The position numbers and the translations under genes were made by a program. Shown here piece by piece: positions 14,730-63,148 of a stretch of 64,000 bases of DNA. Each line of letters begins with the position of its first letter. Positions within the stretch are counted from its first letter, which is position 1. The DNA lies in contig OZ316897.1 in assembly GCA_973895155.1 (NCBI GenBank), positions 3,442,211 to 3,506,210 on the forward strand, written 5' to 3'. The notes under the pieces are model-generated. The model was not told the DNA's origin. It made no database searches and saw nothing but the letters and a program-made list of their open reading frames with translations. The stretch is from Marsupella aquatica (lineage: Eukaryota > Plantae > Marchantiophyta).

Positions 14730-15150
14730 AGCGTTGGCCTCTCCTCTCTGTACGTATAACAATCGTTAGCAATCAACTTGTTACATAGGGAGATAAAATT
14801 TCATTCTTGAGACATGCACCTCTATCTCGATGATTTGGGGAGGCTCGGCTACCAAACCCGTGGATAAGCTGAGTTTGGCCGTTTGTACAGTCCCCGTCTT
14901 TCCTCAACCTGGCAACAAACATCTTCAGTGGGGCAATTCCTATCAGGTTCAGGTCACCAAGCTCGACTCCCTTGCTCTCTGCTCCAACGAGTTTCCAGGC
15001 TGATCCACCTGCACTTGGTCATTTGCTGAATTTGACTGTTGTGGACGTGCTCAGCAGTAGTCTGAATGGGGTGGTTTACTCCAAACGTGAGAATACTCAG
15101 GCTAGGTTTCCCGAAGGTTTTGCGCCTCTGAATGCACTGGATTCCAGAGG
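14730..15150 (+). pseudogene. Degraded plant leucine-rich-repeat (LRR-RLK/RLP-like) gene fragment
   Basis: Frame-broken peptides FLNLATNIFSGAIP, KLDSLALCSNEFPG* and PPALGHLLNLTVVDVLSSSLNGVV fit the plant LRR consensus LxxLxLxxNxLsGxIP. Stops and frameshifts are present. Confidence 0.5.
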
Positions 15151-18100
15151 CTAGTTTTTCTAAGGTAAACTTTCGAGGGTGGCATGTTGGAGCTCTTGCC
15201 TCAATTTGATCATACTGCCTTTGGGCACCATTTTTTAGTTGGGGCTTGCCAGAGTCCATGTGTAATTCATCTATGAAGAATACCTGTCATGCAAAGCATC
15301 TATCATACTGTAACCTGAGAAATGTAGTTAGCGAACCAGGCGACCTTACACAGAATCTTGGTTGAGAAACTGAACTGAAGTCCGGAATACCGGCCATTTT
15401 TTAAAGCATGGAGAGTTGCTTAGACTGTTGTCAATCTTCGAGTCAAAATATTGCTAAATTACAATCAGGACCATTCAGCATTAGGGAGCAGGGATAAATC
15501 CCAGGAGGATGACAAAACTGAACGTCATGGTCATAAAGCGAGTTTTGGGGCCGCCCTTCGATAATGAGTGCCTTATCCTCACGCTATCTCTGCCTGCCGA
15601 GAACCATCCTGCAATTATCATGACTGTATATGACGAGTTGTGGCAGCTAGGGTAGGTTTGCTGTGTGTCAATCATGGCAGAGACAACAGGGGCTGTTGGG
15701 GCAGAGATAACAGGGTTCTACCAATGCTACATGTGCGCAAAGCAATTCTTAAAGCTCTAACTCTTATTGTATTCACCGAACCAATCATAGAAATGACTCC
15801 AACAAGTGGCTTTGCTTCAGTTTACACAAAAAACAAAAACAAAAGGATTCTTTGCCTTCTTCTCATTCAAAAACCAATGAGAGATTCATTCATTTCATTT
15901 CACTTACTGTCATCCTTGGTTTGGTATAATAACATTTTTACATCTGCCTTCCAAAAGAAGGACAGGTAGAGTCCCAAATTTGTAATGAAAAGCAGTTGGA
16001 GTCCTTCAATCCTGTTCATTGTGTCAATAGCATTTTGCCAAAATAATGGTCGTGGATCCTCTATAATTTCTGCCAATTGAGTGATGTCTTTCTTTGGCAG
16101 CCGGTTTAGTCCATTATCTTGTGAACTCTTGGCAGCTTAGAAGAATTGTAAAAATGAATCATGCTAATTGTATTTCTGTCACCTTGTGCAAATTGAAGTG
16201 CAAGCTGCGAAGGATTGAAGAGCTCAACCACAAGCTATTCATTCTAAGGACCTACTGCACTTAAGGTCGAGTGAGTGCCTCATATGTGAGCTTTTTGTGC
16301 CCTCTTGCTCGATTGTTTTCATTGGCCATTATATAGTGTTCCGAGTCGTGATCAGAACTAGTATTTGGATGGTCTGCTCACTTGTCTGGCTTCAAAGAAG
16401 AAAGTTAGATCGAGATGAAATAATCAGATCTCCTGATAATTACGTGATTACGTGATCCTCAGTACGACCTTGAGAAGCAAGGCGACATTGGAGGTCAAGC
16501 GCAGTGCTGCAGAGTTGTTGTGGGAGCTGGCAATTTGGGAGCCAAAAGCTGTAGGTAGCCTAGCTCGGGAGGACGACAACTTTAAGGAGCTACATATAGT
16601 TGTCAAAGGATGTGTTGACTGAGGTGTTGATGAAACAGTATGTTGAGGGGAAATTGATGTGGAGACTCAACAATCTTCTTCTAAGTGAAATTATAGCATC
16701 GTGTACAATAAGGTGTGGCACTAGCTACATCTGTATTTGCTCCTTTCTTTGTTGCTATCCTATGAGGTACATACATTCTTTATCAATAATGTCATCTGAT
16801 ACAATTGGCTTCCGCCCTCCCTGTGTTTTGCTAAATTGTAAAGTCTTAAATCAAGTTGCTATTTCTAGATTAGTCATAGTTTCTTGCTTAACGGTCAAAC
16901 AAGAAGCTGACGTTATCTGCCTTCATGGTAGAGTATGTCACTTTGGATTTTGTTACCTACGATCGGAGCATAGGTTTGGGCATAGGTTCTAATGCTGCAA
17001 AATGTACTGGTTATTGTCTTGAAGGTACTAAAACAAGTCAACAAGCCAACAACACTCTTCACAAATTTGACAGAGGTAGGTCATTCATTCGAGCTTCATC
17101 ATATCATTCTATTATCTTGTATTTTATTTTATGACTCAGGTGTTCTAGTTGTTTAAGGTGGCTATTCAATTCAAAAAAAATTCTATTACACCTAATGACA
17201 GGAAGTGTGCATGTTACCCAGGTGAGATTAGACTAAGAGTCATTTATTTCTTTCAGCTATTTCTTTTCCTGCACTTGCATGTGTGGGCTGGCAGGGATAC
17301 TCACATCTAAGTAGACCCAGGGAAGTCATGCCCTTGGTGGAAACTGTTGGGAAGTGATGTCCCAACAGCCTAGCGCTACTTAGAGGAGAGACAGGTTGCT
17401 TATGAAGGGGAGGGGGCCTTGGAGGTGATTGCCAATGGCAGAGAGTTTAGAGCCTAGTCCTTACATGTGGGTGGTCCAAGAGATATTCTTGGTTGTGGAT
17501 CATTCAACTTACAGAGTGAAAGTCTATGAGTAAATGTCAAACAGACCCTCCAACTCAGAGGAGAGGGATTGGAGTGTGGCTTGGCCCCGACTGCACATGG
17601 ATCTAGCACAATTGGGACAAGCTATATCTGGACAAGCTAATGAAGGCCATGTGCAGATCCCATACCCTCTTGTGCTTACACTGAAGCAAGAGTCCTTGCC
17701 AGCAAAGGGTACAACCCTTCCCACCCGAACAACTTTGGAGAAAGCTGCATGGATCTGGAAAAGTGAATCACCAAGAGAAATGGCTCGGATGGGGCAAGGC
17801 TCTCTTGGGGTTTGTCTTGTGGACGTGGTTCTATTGGTGAGAATCTATAGGTTTGTCTATATTTTTCTCATTCACGTATCAAATACTAATTTGTTCTTTG
17901 GTCTAGAGTTAAGAATTGTTTGCTTGAAAGGTTACTAAAGCCATACTAAGCAACTAAATGCCTCCAATAATTCTTGTGTTCTATCCTGCTTGACATGGTC
18001 CTCCACCATTAAGGCCAACTATCAGCCTTTATTGAAATATTCTTGATACACTTCCATCCAAACATAAGGGCCTTTTAAAACGCCTGAAGAGACTAGACGA

Positions 18101-43772: not shown

Positions 43773-44705
43773 TCATTTAAATTTTGAGAAATTTGGACAT
43801 CGTCCCTCCAGAAATGCTCCTCTCCCTTCCTCAGCCTCATCAGACACATAAGAGTACGTCGATAAGTTGCCTGTCAATGCCTGCTGGTCACTGCTCCCCT
43901 CTGTGGCATTGATAGCTGCCTTGAGGACACGGATTGCGGTGGGGCTATTTGACAATATTTCTCGACACCATTTTACCGTCTCCTGTTCCAGTTTATCAAG
44001 AGGTACTACTGTATTGACAAGGCCCATACCCAAAGCCTCCTGAGCATCATACAACCGTGCCAAAAACCAGACCTCCCTAGTTTTCCTGGCCCCAATCATA
44101 TGAGCCATTGTGCTGACTCCAAATCCGGCATCAAAACTCCCTAGCTTTGGCTGAGTGCAACCAAACACAGCATTGTCCGCTGCAATGGTGAGATCACACA
44201 CAAGCTGCAGAACATTCCCAGCCCCAACAGCATAGCCTGCAACCATGGCGATCACGGGCTTGGACAACCTCCGTATCTGCACTTGCAAATCGAGAATAGT
44301 CAAATTGGGAAGCTCCCTCTGTTCTTCTCCAACATGACCTAAATTGGAACGAACGGCCACCACGCCTCCACTGCAAAATGCCCTATCTCCCTTTCCTGTC
44401 AGAATCACAACGCCAATCTCTGGATCATCTCGGGCATCGGCAAAAGCAACCTGGAGCTCCTCCACCGTCTTGGCTGTGAATGCATTCCGTTGTTCTGGCC
44501 TGTTAATAGTCACCTTGGCAATTCGTTCCCCTTTCTCATACAGAATCTCCTCAAATTCTTTCGCACCTCCTACACACCAACAAGGTCTCCAGTCGACAGG
44601 CTCCATCAGTGCAATTCGGTGCAATCTCTCGTGTCTGCTATTGCCTTCACTCCTGGTTATGTGCCTCGCCACCTGAGCCACGCGCTGTAGACCCCTCTCC
44701 TTCAT
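43773..44705 (-). CDS. menB: Intronless, divergent 1,4-dihydroxy-2-naphthoyl-CoA synthase (MenB/DHNS) paralog, crotonase fold, peroxisomal PTS2
   Basis: Open 310-aa frame with motifs [47 protein letters not shown] and [10 protein letters not shown]-terminal RVAQVARHI fits the PTS2 pattern R-V-x5-H-I carried by plant MenB. Confidence 0.9.
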
Positions 44706-44883
44706 GTCGGTGTAGTATTTGGTGTGTCTCTCTCTCTCGTTTCCCTATCTGGGACCCGTTGACTTCGAAATTCACTTCTCTTTGCTTCAATTTTGAGCCT
44801 CTTGATATGCTCTGTGCATTCACGGAGAAGGATCAGGACCGGATGTACCTCGCTTGGCCCCTTAAAATTGCGTCCCCTACTAG

Positions 44884-45048
44884 TAATTCAAAATGTGACA
44901 ATAGAGGGGACTGGGTCACTCCATACCATGATAAACTCCTAATTCAAAAGTGACAATAGTGGGGACTGTGTCACTCCATAGGACGATAAACTTGTAATTC
45001 AAGTGTGACAATAGAGGGGACTGTGTCACTCCATACCATGATAAACCC
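44884..45048. repeat. ~56-bp tandem repeat x3 upstream of the menB paralog
   Basis: TAATTCAAAATGTGACAATAGAGGGGACTGKGTCACTCCATACCATGATAAAC repeated three times. Each unit carries an inverted GTGAC...GTCAC pair. Confidence 0.85.
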
Positions 45049-45185
45049 AATAATTTTTAAATCACTAAGTGCAATTCTTAATACATATCTGGTTTAATGT
45101 TTTTAATTTGCAAACCCAATTATTTGTAAATCACTAAGTGCTATGCTGAATACTTATCTGGTTGAATGTTTTTGATTTGCAATTT
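45048..45185. repeat. AT-rich ~70-bp tandem duplication
   Basis: AAATCACTAAGTGC...AATAC-TATCTGGTT-AATGTTTTT-ATTTGCAA occurs twice. Confidence 0.7.
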
Positions 45186-46922
45186 CCGTATGCCTTAAAA
45201 CTAGTGGATGCTTTCATTCAATTCTGGCCGGGATCAGTTCTTGCTAAGTGCATGCTCTGTAACCGCATGGCCTTGCTTGCAAGACGACCAGTTTTTGCCT
45301 TTTTTCTTTTCCCTTGTTCCGGCCATTTTGCACTTTTGTTGGACTTTTGGTAAGTGCAAAGGGTCTGCACTAATCAACAAATATTTAAGTGCAAACCCTC
45401 TATAATTGGTATGTTCACTTCTAGGTAAGGGCATGGTTATGGGACAAGTGGGGGTTTAAGATTACCATTTTGCTAACCACTTAAACCTGTAGTCTTTCTA
45501 TTCCTTTGATATTGCGGGGAGAATTTTGCCCCCTACATCATGGAAATCAACAATTTTGCAAGTCTTTCCCGTTAAATTTTGCATGGAGATTTGACCCTAC
45601 GTGGTAATCAATAATTCTGTTGCAAAACTTGTTTTTTAGTCAAAGTTAACACAATCATTCTAGATGGAATTTGAGGCACGTTGAGGCAATTTGTGTCAAA
45701 GTTGTCATTAGAACACACAATTATGTCTATTTTTCTGGTGTTTTTTCAATAGGATTAAAAGGTCATATGATTATCGCCACTGAGGCTGATACTGGTCTCG
45801 AATCGCACTGTCCTTGGGATGCTCCTGAATTGAGCTAAAGTTGAGCTCACCTGCAGCATGAGGGGCACCGTTGTGTCATCCTACACTGATAGTAGAATGC
45901 TCAATTTCACTCGAAATCAAACACAGCATACAAGAAGATCTGTGAAGCAAAAAAAATTTAGTCAGTAAGAGAAATAAATCTTACTAATAATCACTTGAAA
46001 TCAAACACACCATACAAAATGATTTGTCTAAGGCAAAAAAAATCAAGTAAGGCAAAGAAATCTTACTGGTAGAGCGCAATGCACTTAAGGACTATTGTGT
46101 AGAGTGAAGAATCTAAACCATAACTCTCAATAAAAACAAAACAGAAAAACAAAGTAGACAAAAAACAAAGATGGGGTAAAAATGACCAAAAATGCTATGT
46201 AATCATTTTTATTGCACTACTCTTATTATCTTGGTTTGTATCTATGTTCTTATGTTCAAGGAGTTTCTGGGCGATAATCAAATCAGGGGTGGGGTGAAAA
46301 ATACTGATGGGGGCGCATGTGAAGAGAGTTGGTGGAGTAGGGGCCACATGTGAAGAGAGTTGACGGATTAGGGAGGCCGCCTGTGAAGGAGTCAGCTGAA
46401 GGTGGCTATGGTGAAATGCCCACCTCTTCTTCAATTACTAGCTGCTGTCATTGAGGGTCCACACTTTTCTACCCTCATCTCTATTCACATTCAAAGAACG
46501 GGTACTTGGGCTAGTAAACTAAATGACTCATTTTAAGTGCATAAAACGAAGTCATTGCACGAGATGAATTCAAGTTCACCTAGATGCGATGCAATTCCAG
46601 TGCATCAAGATCAAGCTTCAAGGTACAGCCATTTACTTTGCAACTCTCAAAATCTGCAGCGGTCAAAGTCAGACCAAAATTAAGGCAGAAAGACCTGGGC
46701 GGGAATGCAACGATGGAAGATGACTGTTCAGATCTGATCCAGTACCTTAACATCCTACGCAGTTTTTCTGGGACCATGGCAATTTGGATCTCATTGTCAA
46801 GCGTGTCCCGTCGATCGTACAACTAGTCGAAAAGGCGAGGTGAATCCGTGGCGATAGGAGCCAAAAAAGCCAGGAACTTACAAGGTGCTTCAGTACGAAA
46901 CCTGAGTACCCAGCCCAATCAA

Positions 46923-48436
46923 TCAGGCTTTGATTGGACTCGATACTGTCGGTGCCAGCAGCTCCAGCAATGTGGAAATATCGTCCAGCTTCTCCAATTC
47001 GAGCACGCTTTTCTCAATATCATCCCTCCTCTTGTCCTCGACCACCCCCTTCACAAGCTCCCTCCACTTACAGACAATCTCCTCATTACTAACTGGTGGA
47101 TCGATTCCTCGAGGCGCAAATACGTCCTCCACAAATTCTGTCCCATCATGAAATCTCACCGTCATCCTGGTGAGCCATTTCGTGTTCAAGTTCATGTCGA
47201 ACTCCGGGTTATGTCGCGGATGAACCTTCTTCATCAACGCCCGTAGGATCGGTCGATTTAATTTCTCTTCCGAGAACTGCGCCATCAGAACGACCCCGTC
47301 TACAAGCTGGACGGATGCAGCGTACTGGATGCTCATCTGCGCGCTGGTGGTCGTGAGGGGCTTGTCCTCACCGGCAATCCAGCCACCATGCTCGTACGCT
47401 GCTTTGGCGCACTCTACCTCGATTGCTGTAATCGAGTCAAGAGCTCTCATCTTGTCCGTGTGTTTCTTCTGCAAATTTGCAACGCAATCGATCGTTCCGT
47501 GCAAGGCAGCCATAGAAGCATGCAATTTGACCCGTATCCCTTCGAGTTCCCACCTCATGCCGAGGTCTTTTGCAATCTCTTCCGGGAGGGGAGGGCCCTC
47601 ATCACTACCCTGGCCGAAACATGATAGGAATCCTCCATAACGTGTCTCGAAGACTTCGTGAATTCCAGTGTATCACCTCGGGCCATCAGGGCTGCGAAGA
47701 GACCATTCCGTGCTGCGAATCCGTGCTGCATTCTTTTTGCCATGGATCCAAACTGAGCGGACATGAGCCCGCCCGCCTGCGTGCAGGCGATGCCGAGGGC
47801 ATCCTCGATTTTGTTTGGTGGCAGGTTGAGGAAGCTGCTGACGGCCGCTGCGGCAGCTGAGGGGCCTTGGATGGCACCGCTGTGCCATCCTCGGGAGAGG
47901 AGGTCTGCGCCATGCAGGGCAAGACCGACTCGGGGTCCCATTTCGCAACCGATGATGTACGAGAGTAGGAGATCTTTCCCTCTGGCAAGATGATTTGGCG
48001 ATATGGTACTAGAAGCGGCTGAGAAGAGAGCTGGGAGGAGAATAGAGTTTGAGTGTACGGGAGCAATTGAGTGGTAGTCATCGAGTTCAAAGCCTTGGAT
48101 GAAGGTACTGTTGAGGAGTGACGCGCTAAGAGGTGGAAGCCTTTTGCCGCCCCATCCGATAATTGTGCAGGCTCCTTCAGGCTCCATGTTGAAGATTGCC
48201 TTTGCGGCGACCTCGGACCACGGCAGATGGGAGGCGATAATTCCACACGCGATGCCATCGAGGATGAGATACTTTGCTCTCACCTGAATTTTTTCTGGGA
48301 TGTCTGAAAGAGTTGTGGAATGGATCCAGTTACAGAGCTTGCCTGTCACGCCTGCGGCATTGCTTGGCGAGCTGCCTGGTAAAGCTTGGGAGCTCGTGTG
48401 CATAAATTCGTCATCAGTCGCAGCGCCAGAATCCAT
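46923..48436 (-). pseudogene. Fungal-type cis-aconitate decarboxylase-like gene (CadA/ACOD1-IRG1, MmgE/PrpD family), ~504 aa if the single 1-nt frameshift at ~47674 is corrected
   Basis: ORFs 47555-48511 and 46923-47558 join by restoring one G in CGA GGT G[G]A TAC ACT GGA ATT, giving ARGGYTGIHEVFETRYGGFLSCFGQG. Motifs RAKYLILDGIAC, PWSE, FIQGFELDDYHSIAPVHS, GWHSG, EDALGIACTQAGGLMSAQF, KRMQHGFAARNG, QMSIQY, VQLVD and LLELL..PV.SP closely follow Aspergillus terreus CadA as recalled. No introns. Probable start MDSGAATDD at 48436. Confidence 0.88.
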
Positions 48437-48634
48437 TCTTGTAAGAGCAAATTTAACGACTCTCGACTTCCTAAGTTGTGGAATGGATCCGTTACAGAGC
48501 TTGCCTGTCACGCCTGCGGCATCCCTTGCGAGCTGCCTGGTAAAACTTGGGAGCTCGTGTGCATGAATTCTTCATCAGTCGCAGCGCCAGAATCCATTCT
48601 TGTAAGAGCAAATTTAACGACTCTCGACTTCCTA
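48311..48634 (-). repeat. Tandem duplication (163 + 161 bp) of the leader and first ~42 codons of the CAD-like gene
   Basis: Copies at 48311-48473 and 48474-48634. The distal copy has two 1-nt deletions and several substitutions. Confidence 0.92.
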
Positions 48635-48793
48635 TGGCAGAGCTTTACACTACGACAATGCAGTTCGAGATCATCGGCTTGTTACCTTATTATTGTGTTG
48701 AGACAGATGGAAAACTTCTCGGCGTGCAAACAGAGTGTAGAACAATCTAGTGTACACTAGCTCGATGCACGATGACCCGTTCCTTGAACGTAA

Positions 48794-48875
48794 ATAGATA
48801 TTAATCTTGCACAATGTACATTCAGCAAAAGACTATAGATATTAATCTTGCACAATGTACATTCAGCAAAAGACT
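48794..48875. repeat. Perfect 41-bp tandem duplication in the CAD-like upstream region
   Basis: ATAGATATTAATCTTGCACAATGTACATTCAGCAAAAGACT x2. Confidence 0.9.
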
Positions 48876-50417
48876 TGATGGAGGGTGTTCGGCCCGATGT
48901 AGCGCTCCGTAGTTCACGGAGGGAGGACGGAGGGGAGAGTGAGAGTTGACCCGTTCCCTTAGCTTTTTCTTCAGGGGAGGGAGTGAGTGAATGCTGGGGA
49001 CCTTTTACCCATCTGACAGGAAGCCAGACCGTTCGCGATAATTTTTTCAAAATTCTCTGGCCTTTATCGCCAGAATTAGGTCCTGAGTGCCCCTAACCGC
49101 TCCTTTGGGATTACCCGGGCATTTTGTCTTACATTAACAGCTATCTGAGAGTAAGTAGGGTAATCCGGAAAATTACACACCCTGCGACTCGCAGCAGTGC
49201 AACGTTCAGTAAACCCCGCATACTACAAACTCAACGTTTTACTAAGGTTTTTGGCCCTGTTTGAATGGATGTTGCGTTTTCGATCTGCAAACCTCAGGTT
49301 CTGTCAGTCACAAAACTGAGACGCTGATCGTCTACCCAGTAATCCATCGCTATTCGACCTGCAAGTTCGTCCAGGGGCTCTATCTGGATTTGCCTCGGCC
49401 TGCCGGTGGGATTCCTAATGCATATTACATAGGCGATTCTTGGCATGTGCGGTTGAGGCTGAGCTTCCGGGATTGATTCCTCTCACTCAACACTGCGTTT
49501 TTTGGGCCTCCGGCGGTACCTATTGCTTCTGCAGACGTTGAAACAACAAGCTGATTACAATTTCGACTCTGCCACCCCACCATCGCGCCGTCAACGGGAG
49601 TCTTCCACCCCCGTTTTACCCACTCTCGTCGGGCATGGCCAGCGTCAGATCCAACAAAAACACGGGTTCAGTTTCTGGCCGATCAACGGCCTCCACACCG
49701 AATGTAGGGACCTCTGCGCAATCCGGCAGCCAGCGGCGTAGGGGAACGGAAAGCTTGGATTTGGCTCCCACGGTGGACACCACAGTAATCCACTGCATTC
49801 CACAGGAGATCTTGCAATCCGGGAACCGACGGATTTTTGGCAACAAGGTGGTGCTTGGTTTCGAATCTGAATTTGATTCCAGTCAAGCTAGGGACTGGAT
49901 TGCGGCTTACAACCAGGAGAACGTGACAAAATTGGCGCTGCACGATGAATTCCCCCATGCGCTCTTTGTGGTGCAATTTGATAACAATTTGGGAGATGGC
50001 ATCAAGGACCAGCTCCTAAAAGCATCACCTCTCAAGGCCCTGGATCGATTGGCTTCTGTCAACGACTACACTCCCACTTTCGACCCCTGTAACCAAGCAA
50101 ATTTCAAACACCTCGTCACCCTTTACATCAAGCAAGGAAGCCCTGAGATATACGAATACATTCGTTTTGTGGCAGCGCTGGTGGGAACTTTTATCCGGGC
50201 GAAACTGGCACCTGGTACTGAAAGGCACCACTTTTCAGTGATTGTGGAATCCACTTTGAAGGTGTTCCCGGCCCAAGGTAAATTCCAACTCAGTGGCCCT
50301 GGCGTCACTACTATTCATTTTGACTACATTGGCCGAAATTTTCGTTGCTGCTATTGCTTCTCCTATCGGCACCTTGCATCCAGCTGCACGCAGAAGAGAC
50401 CCCCTCTCCTGGCAAAT

Positions 50418-53148
50418 TGTCACCTGCTTATCAAACGATTTACATGACAAATACATATTTACTCATACTAAAATTGTTTGTTATCGTATGACGGGAACGT
50501 GGAGGGACGCTATTAGAATTCTATTGCATTTAGGATGAGTATGTTTATTTACGCTCCCGGAAATGTAGTTTTTGATCAAGTCTACCAACTAGCCGCTCTG
50601 CTTTTGATCAAGTCCCATGGACACACACACTCCTACTGGTCGTTGGTGGAGTGCTGTCACCACCCCTCCTACTCACATGGTTGACCAAACCGTGCAAGGA
50701 TTCCTTAGACATTTCTTGGGGAAAGAACACAATTTTGAACCAGAAAAGATAACGCCACACCAAAACTTGAGGAATCAAACCAAATCCATATCTTTTGGCA
50801 AAACGTCGTAACACATTGCAAGGACAACCCGGCCTACTGCCGTCTGCCCAACTACTGCCTCACTGGGGCAAGTGCTACACCTCTACCTCATTACTCTGGC
50901 TTGATTCCCTCTTCTGGCTATGAGCTAACTTCCCTAAGCAAACACTAGACTGAGTTCCCCCCCTCAGTACTCCGGGGCTCTCCCCCTAAATACTGAAAAA
51001 AACACACCAAAGCACCCCTCACGGGATCACCATGGTGGCGGCCACCCTAGCGGCGCCGCTAAAACCATGCATAAACTTTCACACAAGAAAATCCCTAATC
51101 CTAAAGCATGCGGCACACACATGCTCCTAAAACCCTAATCTAACAATGGGACCGACGATGCCTTCGACGGTGCCCCAACATCACTTCGTGAACCGCGAAA
51201 ATGCAAGTGACCCCATAATTGCCGAAACTAGGTGCCACTCCGATTGCACCTCTGAGCTCACCCCTGGGTAGCCCTACTCCCCATGATCATGAATCACAAA
51301 ACCGCTCTCGAAACGGACGCCAAACGACCAAGTTATGGCCGTTTCAGTATCACTTACTTACCAACTTCGTCGGGCCCTAACTTACTCATCCTGGCTCCGT
51401 TTGAGGAGCGCCGCCTCTTGTTGGAATCAGCTTCGCGAGCTCTTTCCAACAAGCCCGTGAGTGCACCCTTCCAAAAAGTTTCAAAATCCAGAGGTCGTAC
51501 GACAGGTCCGTATGGCTACCCTAGTCCTCCTCTTCACTCACGGTGCCATGGCTTGAGCCCCGTGAGTTGGTCTCCTCATCAATCCTCCTCCTCATTCACG
51601 GTGCCTTGACTTGAGCCCCGTGAGTTGGTCTCCTCATCAATCCTCCTCCTCACTCACGGTGCCTTGGCTTGAGCCCCGTGAGTTGGTCTCCTCATCAGTC
51701 CTCCTCCTCCTCACTCACGGTGCCCTGACTTGAGCCCCGTGAGTTGGTCTCCTCATCAGTCCTCCTCCTCCTCACTCACGGTGCCCTGACTTGATCCCCG
51801 TGAGTTGGTCTCCTCATCAGTCCTCCTCCTCCTCACTCACGGTGCCTTGGCTTGAGCCCCGATCCTCCTGTTCGCCACCACCGGTTCGTTGTAAAAGGAG
51901 GGGGCCCCTATAATTGTCGAAACTACAATTTTCTCAGAATTCATTTCTGAAAACATATCTGAGGAGCCCTCCTCTTCCTGATCATGGCTCCATAAATGGT
52001 GCACAAAACGGAGGTCAAACGGCCAAGATATAATCGTTTAAGTTTTTACGGGGCACCGTCTCCTTTAGTTTCGTCCGTACAACACGTTTCCCCCGGCTTT
52101 GCAAAACACGGATCACGGTTCCCCGTATGTGCTACTACCTCCTCCTTCCCTTGCAAAGCCGGGACCTCCTTCCGTACGGACGTCCATACGGCCTCAAAAC
52201 CCTCGTATTATCAAAAAACGCAATTTGTCGTATCTCCCCCGTCTTAGCTCCGTTTCGGCGCCGTGACACATCGTTGGATTCAGCTTGGCGAGCTCTTTCC
52301 AACAAGCCCATAGACTTCTGATTTTGAGATGGTCGAAAATTTGATGTTTGTACAACTAGGGTCCGTACACACGTTCAAAGCAAGCACAAGAGGGAAAGGG
52401 TTTAGGATTTAGGGTTTAGGTATGGGTGGAAACCCCACAAGTGAGAATAGAGAAAGAAGGGAAGGAAGAAAGTGTGAGGGCCCCTTCTACGGATGTGTTC
52501 TTCTACAGAGTGCCCCTCTACGGAATGGGGAAGGGAAAGAGAACAAAAACCATGTGAGGACCACACAAAGGTTGAAGGGGAACACAAGTGTGAGAACCCC
52601 TTCCTTCTAAGGGCCCTCCCACCATCACTACTCCAAGATTGCCTAGTTTGTTGTTTTATGGGCGTTGAGGTCCCTCAAGATGTCACTGTCTGATATAGAC
52701 CTAAAATCAACTAGAGAACCTCAGTTTCGCATGGGGCTCATTGAGGGCTTCAAAATGAATCCAAACATGACCATGTTTGGAATAGTACTAGCGTAGCAAC
52801 GTTTGTTTTAAGTTTTAACGTTTTCTATATTTTGGTCATTCTTCCCGTTTTGCGCCTTATGTGGAGCCTCCGACCAGCCCCCACCCCTCCAAGATGCTCA
52901 CACCTTGGCTCCAAGTCCTTGGGCTGCCTTGTGGCCTCCTTGTACCCCCTCAATGGTTCCCTTGTCATACATCACCGCCCGACACCCCTCTCAACTCCGG
53001 CCTCCGGTTGTTGCATCCATTTATTAGAACTAACAAAAATAAAAAATTTAAAAATCCAAACACTTTTACTACACCTACTTGTCTTTCTACTTATATACGC
53101 AATTATAAGTCATCACTAAGTTACTACCGGGTTTGGGGCCCTGTCACA
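50418..53148. mobile_element. Large solo LTR (2731 bp), probably Ty3/Gypsy
   Basis: TGTCAC...GTCACA termini with a perfect 5-bp TSD CAAAT (50413-50417, 53149-53153). No coding domains. Superfamily inferred from size and termini only. Confidence 0.85.
51535..51862. repeat. 58-61-bp minisatellite (~5.5 copies) inside the solo LTR
   Basis: CACTCACGGTGCCYTGRCTTGAGCCCCGTGAGTTGGTCTCCTCATCARTCCTCCTCCT unit, with length varying by one CCT triplet. Confidence 0.92.
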
Positions 53149-57596: not shown

Positions 57597-60500
57597 TGTT
57601 GGGTATTTACTCTTACGTCTAGGTTAGGTATGACGTGGTTGGTACAACAACATGGGTTGGTACAACTACGTGATTAGGTACAACTATGTGGTTAGGTACA
57701 ACTACGTGATTAGGTACAACTATGTGGTTAGGTACAACTAAGTTGCACACTATATCATAAGAGGCATGTGTGCTTGGAGAGGTAGAACCAAGGCTCATTG
57801 TTATGGAGCCACTTGAGAGATAGGGAGAGCTTACACTGTGGAGACTCGGTATAGCCGACGGGCTTAGAGTTCAGTAAAGCTCTCTTGTGTGTTCCCGTGG
57901 ACGTAGCCTCAAGGAGGTGAACCACGTATCTCTTGTGTCGACTATTGTGCGTTGGATGGTTCATGGGCTTGCCGTTGCGATCGTCGTCTATGCTCAACAA
58001 TTGGTATCAGAGCATGCTTGGGAGGTGACGTGTGTTCGTGACGGGATTTCATTACGGTTTTTCCAGCGTTGAGTGTCGGTGGATTTCCTGGAGTTCCGTC
58101 GCATAGAACTTGGAGTTTATGGGCTCAACGGATAGATCGGGGCAAGAGCTTTCTAACGGTGTGAAGAAATCGCTGAACGGAGCTTGTGGTGCAGAGAGAT
58201 CTAAGTTTTCGTCGTTCTGGATTTTGTGAAGTAAGTTGGCAATCGACTTGGAGGGAGAAGCGTCAAGTGTTTTGACTCAACGGAGAGATTGAGGCAAGAC
58301 GATTGTTTTGAGTCCGGGATTGGCTCTTTGATGCAAAGAGGAAGAGCACGTGACACCGATACCATCACCGGTGCGGCGTGTGGTGGAGGAAGCAGTACTA
58401 CTACCGGAGCTCACGGTAGTGCCAAAGAAGAAGATGGGGACTTTCAAGCTTGGGGGACCCAAGTATGAAGTGACAAAGTATGATGGGCGCTCTGACTACT
58501 TGCTATGGGAGAAGCAGGTGAAGGGAGTGCTCTATGCATCAGGGATGGGCCAACTGCTGAGCCCTCGTGAAGACGATGTTGATGAGAAACAATGGGACCG
58601 CATGCAGGAGCAGGGAGTGTGGTGTGTTACACTCTATCTCATGCCTCCCATCATCAAGCAGTTGGGTGCACATAAGGATTGCATGTCCTTGTTTGCAGAA
58701 TTGCAGAGCAAGTATCACCGCAAGGAGTTGTCGAACCGGCTCTACACTTCCTACAAACTCATGAGTTTCAGGATGAAGGAATCCGGCACAAAGTTGCAAG
58801 ACCATGTGGATGCTTTCAACGACATGGTCGTTGACTTGGAAAACCTTGGGGAGACTTTGAATGATGAGACGAAGGCTCTGCAGCTTCTTAGTTCATTGCC
58901 TCCATCTTACCAGTCCCTATCACGAGTGTTGTTGCATCGTGATAGGGATACCATTTCATATAATGACGTGGTAAGTTCTCTGCTTAGTGATGATCTTCAG
59001 CAGAAGATGCACATCACATCACAGCCTTCATCATCTGGTGCTGCCCTCAATGTTAACCGTGGGAGGGGTATGCAGCGACCAACTGGGGACCGTAGAACCC
59101 AGTTTAGATCTAAATCCAGATCTAAGTCCAAGGGTAAATCCCCTCAGAGGAGGCAGGTGACATGTTGGAAGTGCAACCAAGTTGGACACTTCAAGCGAGA
59201 CTGTAAGGGAAAGGCAGCGGAAACTTCATCGGCAAATGTGGCTAGGGCTGATGGAGAAGCTGATTTACTCAATGATGAGTATGTTTTATGAAGCCGGGGG
59301 TATGCCCTGTGCACGTCATCTAGGAGAGCAGATGATGTGTGGATTCTTGATTGTGCTTGCTCTTTTCATATTTGTTACATTCGTGAGTTTTTCAGTTCTT
59401 ACTCTATTTTAAACGGTTCAGTTCTGATGGGAAATGATCACTCCTGTCAAATTGAGGGAATTGGGTCTGTGAAGATTCAAATGTTTGATGGCGCTGTGCG
59501 CACAGTGTCCGGAGTCAGGTATGTACCTGGCATGCGTAAGAATCTGATTTCACTCGGTGTGTTGGATTCAAATGGTCATCAATGGAGCGTTATTGATGGT
59601 GAACTTCAAGTCAGGTCGGGAGAGACAGTGATTTTGAAGGGGAGTAGACAAAAGAATTTGTATGTGTTACAGGGCAATACTGTATGTGGAGAGGCCAATG
59701 TAACCAAGTCTCACGAGGAGATGACTCAACTGTGACATTCACGGCTAGGCCATATGAGTGAGAAGGGTTTGGCTATCTTACGGAAGAATGGACTCATTTC
59801 TGATTTGCAATCTTGTAAATTAGAGTTTTGTGAGCATTGCATTCTTGGAAAGCAGCATCGTCGTGCTTTTGGTGTTGGAACTCATCGTTCCAAAGCGGTT
59901 CTTGAGTACATACATAGTGACGTGTGGGGTCCATCCCCGACTCCCTCACACTCTGGAAAGTTGTACTATGTATCATTTATTGATGATTACTCAAGATTTG
60001 TGTGAATTTATTTCATGACGCATAAGTCTGATGTCTTGTCCATTTTTAAGAAGTGGAAGGCCCAGGTGGAGAATCAGACTGGAAACACGATCAAGTGTTT
60101 GGATACAAGGGTGAAGAGTCTGAGGTCAGACAACGGCGGGGAGTACACTTCAATGGAATTTGAAGAGTACTGTTCAGAACAGGGGATAACTCGCCATCTC
60201 ACCACAGTTTATACTCCACAGCAGAATGGTGTCGCTGAGAGGCTCAATCGGACACTGTTGGAGCGGTCACGGAGTATGTTGAGCCAATCAGGTTTACCAC
60301 AAGAATTTTGGGCAGAAGCTATCAATACCGCAGCTTATTTGGTAAATCTTTCTCCTTCTAGTGCTATCAATTTCAAAACGCCGTTTGAGATGTGCTATAA
60401 GCGGCAAGCAGACTATCATGGCTTGGTAGTTTTTGGAAGTGATGCATATGCTCTCACACCGAAGCAGAATAGGACCAAGTTGGATCCTACCTCCAAGAAA

Positions 60501-63148
60501 TATGTTTTTCTTGGGTACCAGAGTGGTGTGAAAGCCTATAGGCTATGGGATCCTATTGCCTGTAAGCTCGTTGTCAGTAGGGATGTTTCCTTCAATGAAT
60601 CCAGATTATTGAAGGAGGGGGAGAATACTCAGGTCTCCCGTACTGACAAAGGAAAATCTCCTATCCCGGATCTCGTTGAGGGGGAGATTGGTTATGAGGT
60701 GCATGACCGGAAAGAAGGAGTTGCTCCAATTATGGAGCTGGTTCCTGTGCCAGAGGAGTTTGTTGATGCTGGTGAGCAGCAAGTGGATGCTATTGAGCTT
60801 CAAATTGTACCAGCACACGCAGATCAACCGGAGTCATCGGCTAGAAGAACATCTGGTCGCACTGTACGCGCTCCACCAAGGTATGGACAGTGGGTTGATT
60901 CATCTCAACTGCAAGAGGATGATTTTACAGTTGATGATGAGGGTGATGTGTTAATTTTGGAAGAAGGGGAACCTTCTTCATTTCATGAGGCAAGTGCTTC
61001 AAAGGAGAAGTAGAAGTGGACTGCAGCAATGCAAACGGAGATGCAGTCACTAAAGGACAACAAAACTTGGGAGCTTGTTAAGCTGCCTAAGGGTCAGCAA
61101 GTGGTGGACAGCAAGTGGATTTACAAGCTGAAGGATAATTCCATAGGAGGTGGATCGAAGGTCTACAAGGCTAGATTGGTAGCAAAGGGATTCACACAAG
61201 AGAAAGGTGTGGATTACAATGAGGTCTTCTCACCAGTTGCTAAGTACTCTACAATACGACTATTGTGTGTACTTGTTGTAATGTTTGGTCTGCTGCTAGA
61301 TCAGATGGATGTTGTCACAGCTTTCCTCTATGGCACATTGGAAGAGGTGATCTTCATGAGACAACCGCTAGGTTTTGTGAAGAGAGGACAGGAGGAATTG
61401 GTTTGCAGATTGCTGAAATCCTTGTATGGGTTGAAGCAATCACCAAGACAGTGGAACAAGCGGTTTGACGATTGGATTCAGTCACAAGGTTTTCACAGAA
61501 GTGTATTTGACCCTTGTGTGTATTTGAAACCGGTAAAGAATGTTGTCTTTGGGTTCATTGTTTTAGTACTTTATGTGGATGATATGCTAATTGCAGCCAA
61601 GGATAGGTCTGAGATTGTTAAGCTCAAGGCACTGCTTAGTGCAGAGTTTAAGATGAAGGACTTAGGGCCAGCTAAGAGGATTTTGGGTATGGAGATCACT
61701 AGGGACTTGGAGGCTGGCAAGCTATGGTTGACGCAGAGCAGTTATGCGAGGAAGGTAATTGCAAGGTTCAACATGGGGAATAGCAAGCCAGTAAGTACCC
61801 CGTTGGCTCCACACTTCAAGTTATCATCGGCGTTCTGTCCTACGGATGACACAGAGAAGGGGTTGATGTCAAAGGTTCCGTATGACAAGGCAGTGGGGAG
61901 TCTCATGTATTTGATGACTTGCACTAGACCTGATCTTGCCATGGCTATGGGCAAGGTAAGCAGGTACATGTCAAATCCAGGGAAGGTACACTGGGAAGCA
62001 GTGAAGTGGATTATCAGGTACTTGAAGGGTACCGTGGATCATGGTCTTTTATTTGATGCGAATGCAAAGAATGCTAAATCATTGATTGGCTATGTTGATT
62101 CTGACTATGGACAAGATTTGGACCGAAGGAGATCAACAACAGGATACGTGTTCACACTTGGCGGTGGATGCATAAGTTGGAGGTCTACTTTGCAGAAGTG
62201 TATTGCTCAGTCTACTACAGAAGCGGAGTATGTTGCAGCTGCGGAAGCAGCAAAGGAAGCGATTTGGTTGGATAGACTTATCACTGAAATGGGATTGCCA
62301 CAGGGGAATGTGAAGCTCCATTGTGATAGTCAAAGTGCGCTCCACCTTGCTGTGAACCAGGTGATGGACAGCAGAGTGAAGCACATTGACGTTAGGTACC
62401 ATTTTATCAGGCAGGCTGTGTTTGATAATTTGTTTGAGCTAGTCAAGATTGATGGTAAACTCAACCCGGTTGATGCATTTACCAAAGTGATTCCTTTGGA
62501 GAGTTTCTCTAGACACCGTGACGTATTGCAGGTTTTGCAATTGCATCACAAGTAGAGTTTTCTTAACATTCATTGTAATTACTGATATATGCTCTTCCTC
62601 ATTCCTATGTATTAGGCTACGGCTTAGTTCTGGTTTGCTCTAGTTAGAGAGGGAAACCGGTTTGGTTTTTGTCAAGAACTTCCCGCTGAGGGATCATATA
62701 CATTGGCAGTATTACTCTCCCCTAGACCAGAGTCAAGGGGAAGATTGTTGGGTATTTACTCTTACGTCTAGGTTAGGTATGACGTGGTTGGTACAACAAC
62801 GTGGGTTGGTACAACTACGTGATTAGGTACAACTATGTGGTTAGGTACAACTATGTGATTAGGTACAACTATGTGGTTAGGTACAACTAAGTTGCACACT
62901 ATATCATAAGAGGCATGTGTGCTTGGAGAGGTAGAACCAAGGCTCATTGTTATGGAGCCACTTGAGAGATAGGGAGAGCTTACACTGTGGAGACTCGGTA
63001 TAGCCGACGGGCTGAGAGTTCAGTAAAGCTCTCTTGTGTGTTCCCGTGGACGTAGCCTCAAGGAGGTGAACCACGTATCTCTTGTGTCGACTATTGTGCG
63101 TTGGATGGTTCATGGGCTTGCCGTTGCGATCGTCGTCTATGCTCAACA
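57597..63148 (+). mobile_element. Full-length Ty1/Copia LTR retrotransposon (5552 bp)
   Basis: 403-bp LTRs at 57597-57999 and 62746-63148 (three differences seen by eye). TSD TGTGC, PBS TGGTATCAGAGC (tRNA-iMet) at 58002-58013, and polypurine tract AAGGGGAAGA immediately before the 3' LTR. Confidence 0.97.
58434..62555 (+). pseudogene. Copia gag-pol (gag, protease, GAG-pre-integrase, integrase, RT, RNase H) in one frame with four internal stops
   Basis: CWKCNQVGHFKRDC knuckle, WILDCACSFH protease, H-H-C-C zinc finger, HSDVWG/RSDNGGEY/QQNGVAER integrase, YKARLVAKG/LYVDDML RT and YVDSD/TEAEY/CDSQSA RNase H. Stops at 59289, 59733, 60003 and 61011; no frameshifts. Confidence 0.93.

Follow-up and report, generated by a model that had tools for sequence, protein, structure and literature searches.

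A CadA-like MmgE/PrpD gene of fungal origin in the chromosome of the liverwort Marsupella aquatica, with a frameshift that is polymorphic among samples

In animals, itaconate is a major metabolite with antimicrobial and signalling roles, and industry obtains it from fungi. The closest described systems to the gene considered here are CadA, the itaconate synthase of Aspergillus terreus, and the mammalian enzyme ACOD1/IRG1; human and fungal cis-aconitate decarboxylases (CAD) are just 25% identical (PMC6789909). In plants, itaconate has been found in maize and Arabidopsis, and a BLAST search for a CAD homologue in Arabidopsis, maize and rice was unsuccessful (PMC12143382). A second point of comparison is provided by genes that liverworts have acquired by horizontal gene transfer (HGT): the main text of the bryophyte super-pangenome study (Nat Genet 2025, PMC12513842) counts 1,809 HGT families, and the liverwort cases described in the main text of that paper and of PMC12890914 are, like the present one, intronless microbe-derived enzymes in surroundings rich in transposable elements, restricted to a lineage and under selection. 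The main text of neither paper mentions an MmgE/PrpD or CAD-like gene, though their supplementary tables may list one, and our literature search, whose reach ended short of the supplementary HGT tables, likewise found no such gene reported from bryophytes. Here we analyze a CAD-like gene of the MmgE/PrpD superfamily in a 64,000-nucleotide stretch of the Marsupella aquatica genome (contig OZ316897.1, positions 3,442,211 to 3,506,210 of the forward strand), which we refer to as the window and within which all positions below are counted. Our analysis makes it very probable that an ancestor of several leafy liverworts captured the gene from a fungus of the Pezizomycotina, that purifying selection has kept it since, and that the copy in the window is a null allele. 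Fungus-to-bryophyte transfer is already well documented, and the liverwort CAD-like gene is a new member of that set.

The gene lies on the minus strand at 48436-46923, from a start ATG at 48436-48434 to a stop TGA at 46925-46923, with one 1-bp deletion at 47673/47674. It appears as two adjoining minus-strand open reading frames (ORFs), 48511-47555, in which the true ATG is at 48436, and 47558-46923. The upstream ORF contains the Pfam domain MmgE_PrpD_N (PF03972; E 1e-55, 189 bits against a cut-off of 32.1) and the downstream ORF MmgE_PrpD_C (PF19305; E 1.2e-36, 127 bits against 32.1), and since both domains score above the gathering threshold the protein belongs to the MmgE/PrpD superfamily. 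The N domain is encoded by 254 codons (47675-48436), which hold Glu117, Tyr121, His128, His185 and Lys234, and the C domain by 249 codons plus the stop (46923-47672), open in what is the -1 frame as counted from the N part, which hold Lys304, Met309, His313 and Trp353 in read-through numbering. From ATG to stop the DNA is collinear with a 1506-bp intronless gene of the liverwort Calypogeia fissa, and therefore contains no intron. Six indels separate the two genes, of which five are multiples of three and one breaks the frame. With an X placed at the break, read-through gives a protein of 504 amino acids. The preliminary description of this DNA had given the gene the same coordinates, family, lack of an intron and frameshift-corrected length. 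It had also called the gene relatively GC-rich, as indeed it is: its GC content is 0.54 (0.59 at third codon positions, against 0.49 in the neighbouring host gene), compared with 0.446 for the window.

Compared with A. terreus CadA, the liverwort gene shares the superfamily, the two-domain layout, the length of about 500 amino acids, the intronless fungal-type structure and a His/His/Lys/Lys set of active-site residues. It differs from CadA in being borne by a plant, in having no itaconate-cluster partners adjoining it and in being frameshifted here; CadA is, moreover, more distant from the liverwort gene than any of the best matches described next.

Searches with the two gene pieces, queried separately (the X-joined protein was used for the tree only), returned 3122 protein homologues, and our statements on relatives rest on the best 120 of these. 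The closest, the C. fissa protein, is 82% identical in the N part and 79% identical when the whole length is compared. A Logan sequence, P0002, follows at 78%, and then, at 73-75%, come proteins from metagenomes and from black yeasts of the Chaetothyriales. Plant labels among these matches belong to C. fissa and to a single nr entry from Quercus suber, the rest being fungal or unnamed. P0002 comes from run SRR33208280 and is most likely a third liverwort copy, since this run contains, in addition, a MenB-like protein of liverwort type that shares 75.7% identity with the one encoded near the gene in the window.

We built a maximum-likelihood tree of 64 rows under LG+C20 PMSF, which has no independent root and for which we give support as UFBoot/SH-aLRT. 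The window sequence groups with C. fissa (99/81), and both with P0002 (100/99). These three liverwort copies join the unnamed sequence P0033 (97/86), lie within a clade of 11 rows whose remaining members are unnamed (98/90), and with these fall into a 50-row clade containing named Chaetothyriales and Dothideomycetes (100/99), while Eurotiales, Leotiomycetes, Saccharomycotina and Mucoromycota lie outside it. The recipient sequences are thus nested within donor diversity. An approximately unbiased (AU) test, in which the early-diverging group was chosen after inspection of a tree, rejects a placement of the liverwort clade with early-diverging fungal rows (p = 3.7e-5, log-likelihood difference 57.9). 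The preliminary description had proposed a fungus-to-plant transfer and had noted that a tree could speak against it; no vertically inherited streptophyte clade appeared among the 64 rows. Could the gene nonetheless be an old plant gene, inherited vertically and lost in nearly all other plants, or have passed from plants to fungi? With an unrooted gene tree this is formally possible, but we consider it extremely improbable: there are three liverwort sources against hundreds of fungal sequences from Pezizomycotina, Saccharomycotina and Mucoromycota, several well-supported nodes enclose the liverwort clade, the AU test rejects the early-diverging placement, the gene is intronless in an intron-rich host, and the BLAST search cited above found no homologue in Arabidopsis, maize or rice. 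An ascomycete origin of the gene, with integration into a liverwort chromosome, is well supported.

The Quercus suber entry (P0065, named cis-aconitate decarboxylase) falls among fungal-type sequences in a part of the tree remote from the liverwort clade, and is probably fungal DNA in that assembly or else a separate event.

Integration was examined in four read sets (X1 to X4) from two studies, each viewed as Logan contigs, in which 77-97% of sampled words of 44300-50200 are present. The depth of the contig carrying the gene equals that of its single-copy flanks in all four runs (12 against 17, 39 against 40-49, 38-54 against 47, and 86 against 57-100). The gene lies 2.2 kb from an intronless MenB-like gene of liverwort type with an enoyl-CoA hydratase fold (43773-44705, minus strand), whose best matches are in Calypogeia fissa (80%), Marchantia paleacea (72%) and Riccia fluitans (71%), with further land plants and then green algae among the next matches; the host is a leafy liverwort akin to Calypogeia and yet separate from it. 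In C. fissa, an intact and intronless copy sits inside a 5.98-Mb contig. Ascomycetes live in leafy liverworts, and one could imagine that a fungus on or in the plant supplied the gene and that the assembler joined it to plant DNA. The GC content of the gene, above the window mean, would suit this picture, as would the repeats on either side of it, which no Logan contig bridges. However, besides the equality of depth in four runs and the C. fissa copy in its long contig, only about 2.4 kb is fungal-like, with the liverwort gene on one side and a long interspersed nuclear element (LINE) on the other; the three liverwort copies form a single clade, whose divergence keeps pace with that of a host gene; and their identity to the nearest fungal contig sequence is only 66-70%. 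A contaminant or a chimeric join, which the preliminary description had named as a danger, is therefore very unlikely, and the four runs give no sign of one, though their contigs stop at repeats short of the junctions.

If the gene was acquired once and then inherited, we expect its divergence among liverworts to follow that of a host gene. Table-like comparison is possible for three pairs, with the MenB-like gene as the host reference. Between the window and C. fissa, amino-acid identity is 79.1% for the CAD-like and 80.0% for the MenB-like protein, with synonymous divergence (dS) of 0.82 and 0.55. Between the window and SRR33208280 the identities are 76.5% and 75.7% (dS 0.89 and 0.95), and between C. 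fissa and SRR33208280 they are 73.3% and 73.1% (dS 1.08 and 0.76). The two divergences run parallel, which fits one ancestral acquisition followed by vertical descent. Over the same three pairs, at dS of 0.8-1.1, the ratio of nonsynonymous to synonymous divergence (dN/dS) of the CAD-like gene is 0.16-0.17. Three liverwort sources, monophyletic at 100/99, thus share a gene under purifying selection, and because of that selection it will have served these plants as a working enzyme. The sequence of events would then be that a filamentous ascomycete (Pezizomycotina) gave an intronless CadA-like MmgE/PrpD gene to an ancestor of several leafy liverworts, and that the acquired gene was passed down vertically under purifying selection.

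A different history would have related fungi giving the gene independently to separate liverwort lineages. Two observations lend themselves to it. In the 10-kb flanks to either side of the C. fissa gene, nothing beyond the CAD-like gene itself matches the window, in comparisons of both DNA and protein with the whole window, and the dS between window and C. fissa is higher for the CAD-like gene (0.82) than for the single host gene compared (0.55). The absence of shared flanks carries little information, because the MenB-like locus is equally without conserved flanks: for both C. fissa MenB-like loci, with 10 kb each side compared with the whole window, only the genes themselves match. The liverwort copies, on the other hand, form one clade at 100/99 with the fungal sequences outside it, they have in common an N-terminal extension that can be aligned as DNA, and their pairwise identities closely follow those of the host gene. 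Several transfers are accordingly improbable in our view. Syntenic orthologues in related species, suggested as a check in the preliminary description, are borne out as far as an intact C. fissa orthologue goes, and not as regards common flanks within 10 kb.

For the capture of a Pezizomycotina gene by a liverwort ancestor as a whole, the missing synteny and the higher dS just described are points on the other side of the balance, and there are further ones. No short-read contig in the four runs bridges a junction, since all break at dispersed repeats near 46.3 kb and at 48.4-48.8 kb, and physical linkage consequently rests on the assembly and on equality of depth. No RNA runs holding the stretch were found. 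The immediate fungal sisters are unnamed metagenome sequences, whose fungal identity comes from leads in their genomic context: their contigs are gene-dense, an ALG10 neighbour on one (L003) matches Ascomycota clusters (0.98), and a mitochondrial-carrier neighbour on another (L004) matches Ascomycota and Basidiomycota clusters (0.91-0.92), in both cases as a lead only. To these we add three points that concern the enzyme rather than the transfer. Half of the eight human active-site residues differ, with Glu117 for Asp93, Tyr121 for Thr97, Met309 for His277 and Trp353 for Tyr318; the nearest relatives are all uncharacterized; and the resemblance to A. terreus CadA is one of motifs, all of which, as the preliminary description had said, are found in the sequence.

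We now turn to the frameshift. At 47674/47673 a Gly codon lacks one G that the C. fissa gene has. This is the sole indel between the two genes that is not a multiple of three, and past this site the shifted frame meets a stop 41 codons on. Contigs of X1, X2 and X3, which come from both studies, span the site without an extra base, and because three runs across both studies carry it the frameshift is real and not an assembly error. X4 covers the site with just one contig, at depth 90, and in it a further C follows behind 47673 on the plus strand, which restores the Gly codon and the reading frame. The indel is thus polymorphic, with the frame-restoring base in one run. The X4 contig differs from the window at only 3 other positions in the coding region, its flanks being far more divergent. 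The copies of C. fissa, SRR33208280 and X4 type are open at the site, and the window allele is not. Since at least one other sample has the in-frame form, the loss is recent and segregating, and the window allele is a recent, segregating null of an otherwise conserved gene. At the level of the protein, a 1-bp deletion after codon 254 truncates the product ahead of the C-terminal half that bears Lys304. Liverwort gametophytes are haploid, so the sequenced individual, carrying the null allele, is without the enzyme.

As an observation apart, the X2 contig over 46777-48358 shows zero substitutions relative to the window and 17 extra letters.

What would the intact enzyme do? Eight active-site residues have been described in human ACOD1, namely Asp93, Thr97, His103, His159, Lys207, Lys272, His277 and Tyr318; His103, His159, Lys207 and Lys272 are common to fungal CadA and to IDS epimerase, the other four differ in fungal CadA, and His103, Lys207 and Lys272 show strict conservation in 2-methylcitrate dehydratase as well (PMC6789909). 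The liverwort protein retains the equivalents of the four common residues as His128, His185, Lys234 and Lys304, which each of the three liverwort copies has and which vary little or not at all among 113 relatives. The preliminary description had read an Asp/His/His/Lys/Lys/His active site from the sequence. The central His/His/Lys/Lys of that reading holds, as it does in other MmgE/PrpD enzymes, while the Asp is a Glu and the last His a Met. The Glu/Tyr/Met/Trp pattern itself occurs in all three liverwort copies, apart from a Val and a Tyr in single copies, and in nearly all of the 113 relatives. The four retained residues are necessary and, because IDS epimerase has them, not specific for a substrate, and the other four set the gene apart from the animal type of CAD, not necessarily from the fungal one. 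Mammalian ACOD1 is in any case a distant relative.

Comparison with solved structures points in the direction of CAD. The best matches of both halves are human and mouse ACOD1/IRG1 (6R6U, 6R6T, 7BR9) and Bacillus subtilis IRG1 (7BRA), at E 1e-19 to 1e-8; for the N part the IRG1/CAD proteins come first (E 1e-19 to 1e-16), followed by IDS epimerase, and PrpD is absent among solved structures at E 1e-5 or better. The 2-methylcitrate dehydratase PrpD has its Pfam domains in common with the liverwort family. Neither window piece has a match in NCBIfam, however, and the intact C. fissa orthologue falls far below the PrpD equivalog cut-offs, with 28 bits against 950 and 26 against 575. A. terreus CadA is absent from the best 120 of the 3122 homologues, which for the N part means at 55% identity or above. 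Judged by its residues, the protein looks like a catalytically competent member of a fungal CadA-like branch, and the likeliest substrate of its His/His/Lys/Lys site is a tri- or dicarboxylate resembling cis-aconitate. Decarboxylation to itaconate or an alkyl-itaconate is our leading guess. The enzyme may well be cytosolic, as its acidic N-terminus, its lack of obvious transit-peptide character and the absence of a C-terminal SKL would suggest.

Conversion of cis-aconitate to itaconate specifically, as in A. terreus, is a serious candidate that falls somewhat short of even odds, and most of the remaining probability goes to a reaction on a related carboxylate. A gene of fungal origin could encode an enzyme for some other carboxylate, with alkyl-aconitate decarboxylase, dehydratase or isomerase/epimerase activity, for example, like other MmgE/PrpD enzymes, and we give this an even chance. 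The preliminary description had likewise, and rightly, allowed for other carboxylates. Aspergillus niger HadA, a CadA homologue acting on hexylaconitate, offers a precedent. Another substrate is also suggested by the presence of all four retained residues in IDS epimerase and of three of them in 2-methylcitrate dehydratase (PMC6789909), by the four changed pocket residues, and by the uncharacterized state of the close relatives. It is disfavoured by the solved CAD/IRG1 proteins as best structural matches with no PrpD among them, by the low NCBIfam scores and, weakly, by the CadA/IRG1 names that automatic source annotation has given to close relatives.

If the enzyme does make itaconate-type acids, the consequences could reach further. 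It is conceivable, though on balance unlikely, that an enzyme of fungal descent lets some leafy liverworts produce itaconate or an alkyl-itaconate. Theirs would then be the first gene of the CAD family to be identified in any land plant, its product would be a possible weapon against the isocitrate lyase of colonizing microbes, and the pathway would be polymorphic; working and broken alleles segregating in nature would then amount to a ready-made natural knockout. As a CAD-family gene in a land plant, the liverwort gene gives plant itaconate-type chemistry a concrete candidate, for this lineage only, and the segregating frameshift lets accessions be compared directly. More generally, the fungus-to-bryophyte transfers, whose number is growing, gain a clean and well-controlled example in this gene, one whose interest is heightened by the metabolite at stake and by the natural knockout allele.

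Some features of the fungal relatives and of the gene's surroundings deserve mention. On two contigs of fungal sisters, an EF-hand gene lies just upstream of the CAD-like gene (L003 8285-8671, L005 8147-8482), and on L003 a major facilitator superfamily (MFS) transporter lies 3.4 kb downstream of it (14891-16000), a placement that recalls the cadA-mfsA arrangement of A. terreus. We draw no inference from it as to an itaconate cluster in the fungal relatives. A carrier gene 4.4 kb from the CAD-like gene of a relative was considered as a tricarboxylate carrier and set aside, this mitochondrial carrier matching LEU5-like clusters instead.

Upstream of the CAD-like gene, on the same strand, lies a tandem copy (48474-48634, about 161 bp, 96% identical) of 48311-48473, which repeats the tail of the 5' leader together with some 125 nucleotides from the start of the coding sequence. 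It has its own ATG at 48597, opening a 29-codon upstream ORF, and run X4 has many differences from the window within it. Local repeats comprise three copies of a 55-bp unit at 44891-45055 and two of a 41-bp unit at 48794-48875. Depth peaks of 3-5 times, with many branching contigs, mark dispersed repeats at 44891-45055, 46270-46466 and 48634-48875. We considered a transposon as carrier of the gene and rejected the idea, as there are no inverted or direct repeats around it and dispersed repeats account for the peaks in depth at 46.3 kb and 48.7 kb.

The counterpart of the MenB-like neighbour in C. fissa (P0121, L006 10001-10933; 80% identical, dN/dS 0.21) is intronless as well, and C. fissa also has a second MenB-like paralogue (P0122, L007 10001-13172) that spans 3.2 kb and has introns; the neighbour looks like an old retrocopy retained by selection. 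A conserved module of CAD-like and MenB-like genes is ruled out, since the C. fissa genes sit on separate contigs. On the other side of the CAD-like gene, at 49635-50447 on the plus strand, is ORF1 of a LINE (a non-LTR element, LTR standing for long terminal repeat) with a CCHC knuckle, which has only 18 relatives in the protein collection; in these relatives Exo_endo_phos/RVT_1 ORFs follow. In the window, none of the ORFs of at least 85 amino acids downstream, at about 50.5-57.5 kb, has a Pfam match, no intact ORF2 was detected, and the ORF2 of this element appears to have decayed. The window also contains exons of tubulin and Met-tRNA synthetase. Farther along, at 58350-62555 on the plus strand, lies a copia-type LTR retrotransposon whose gag, integrase and RVT_2 regions are split over several ORFs; with it, the liverwort-type MenB-like gene and the LINE ORF1, the flanks named in the preliminary description are all in place.

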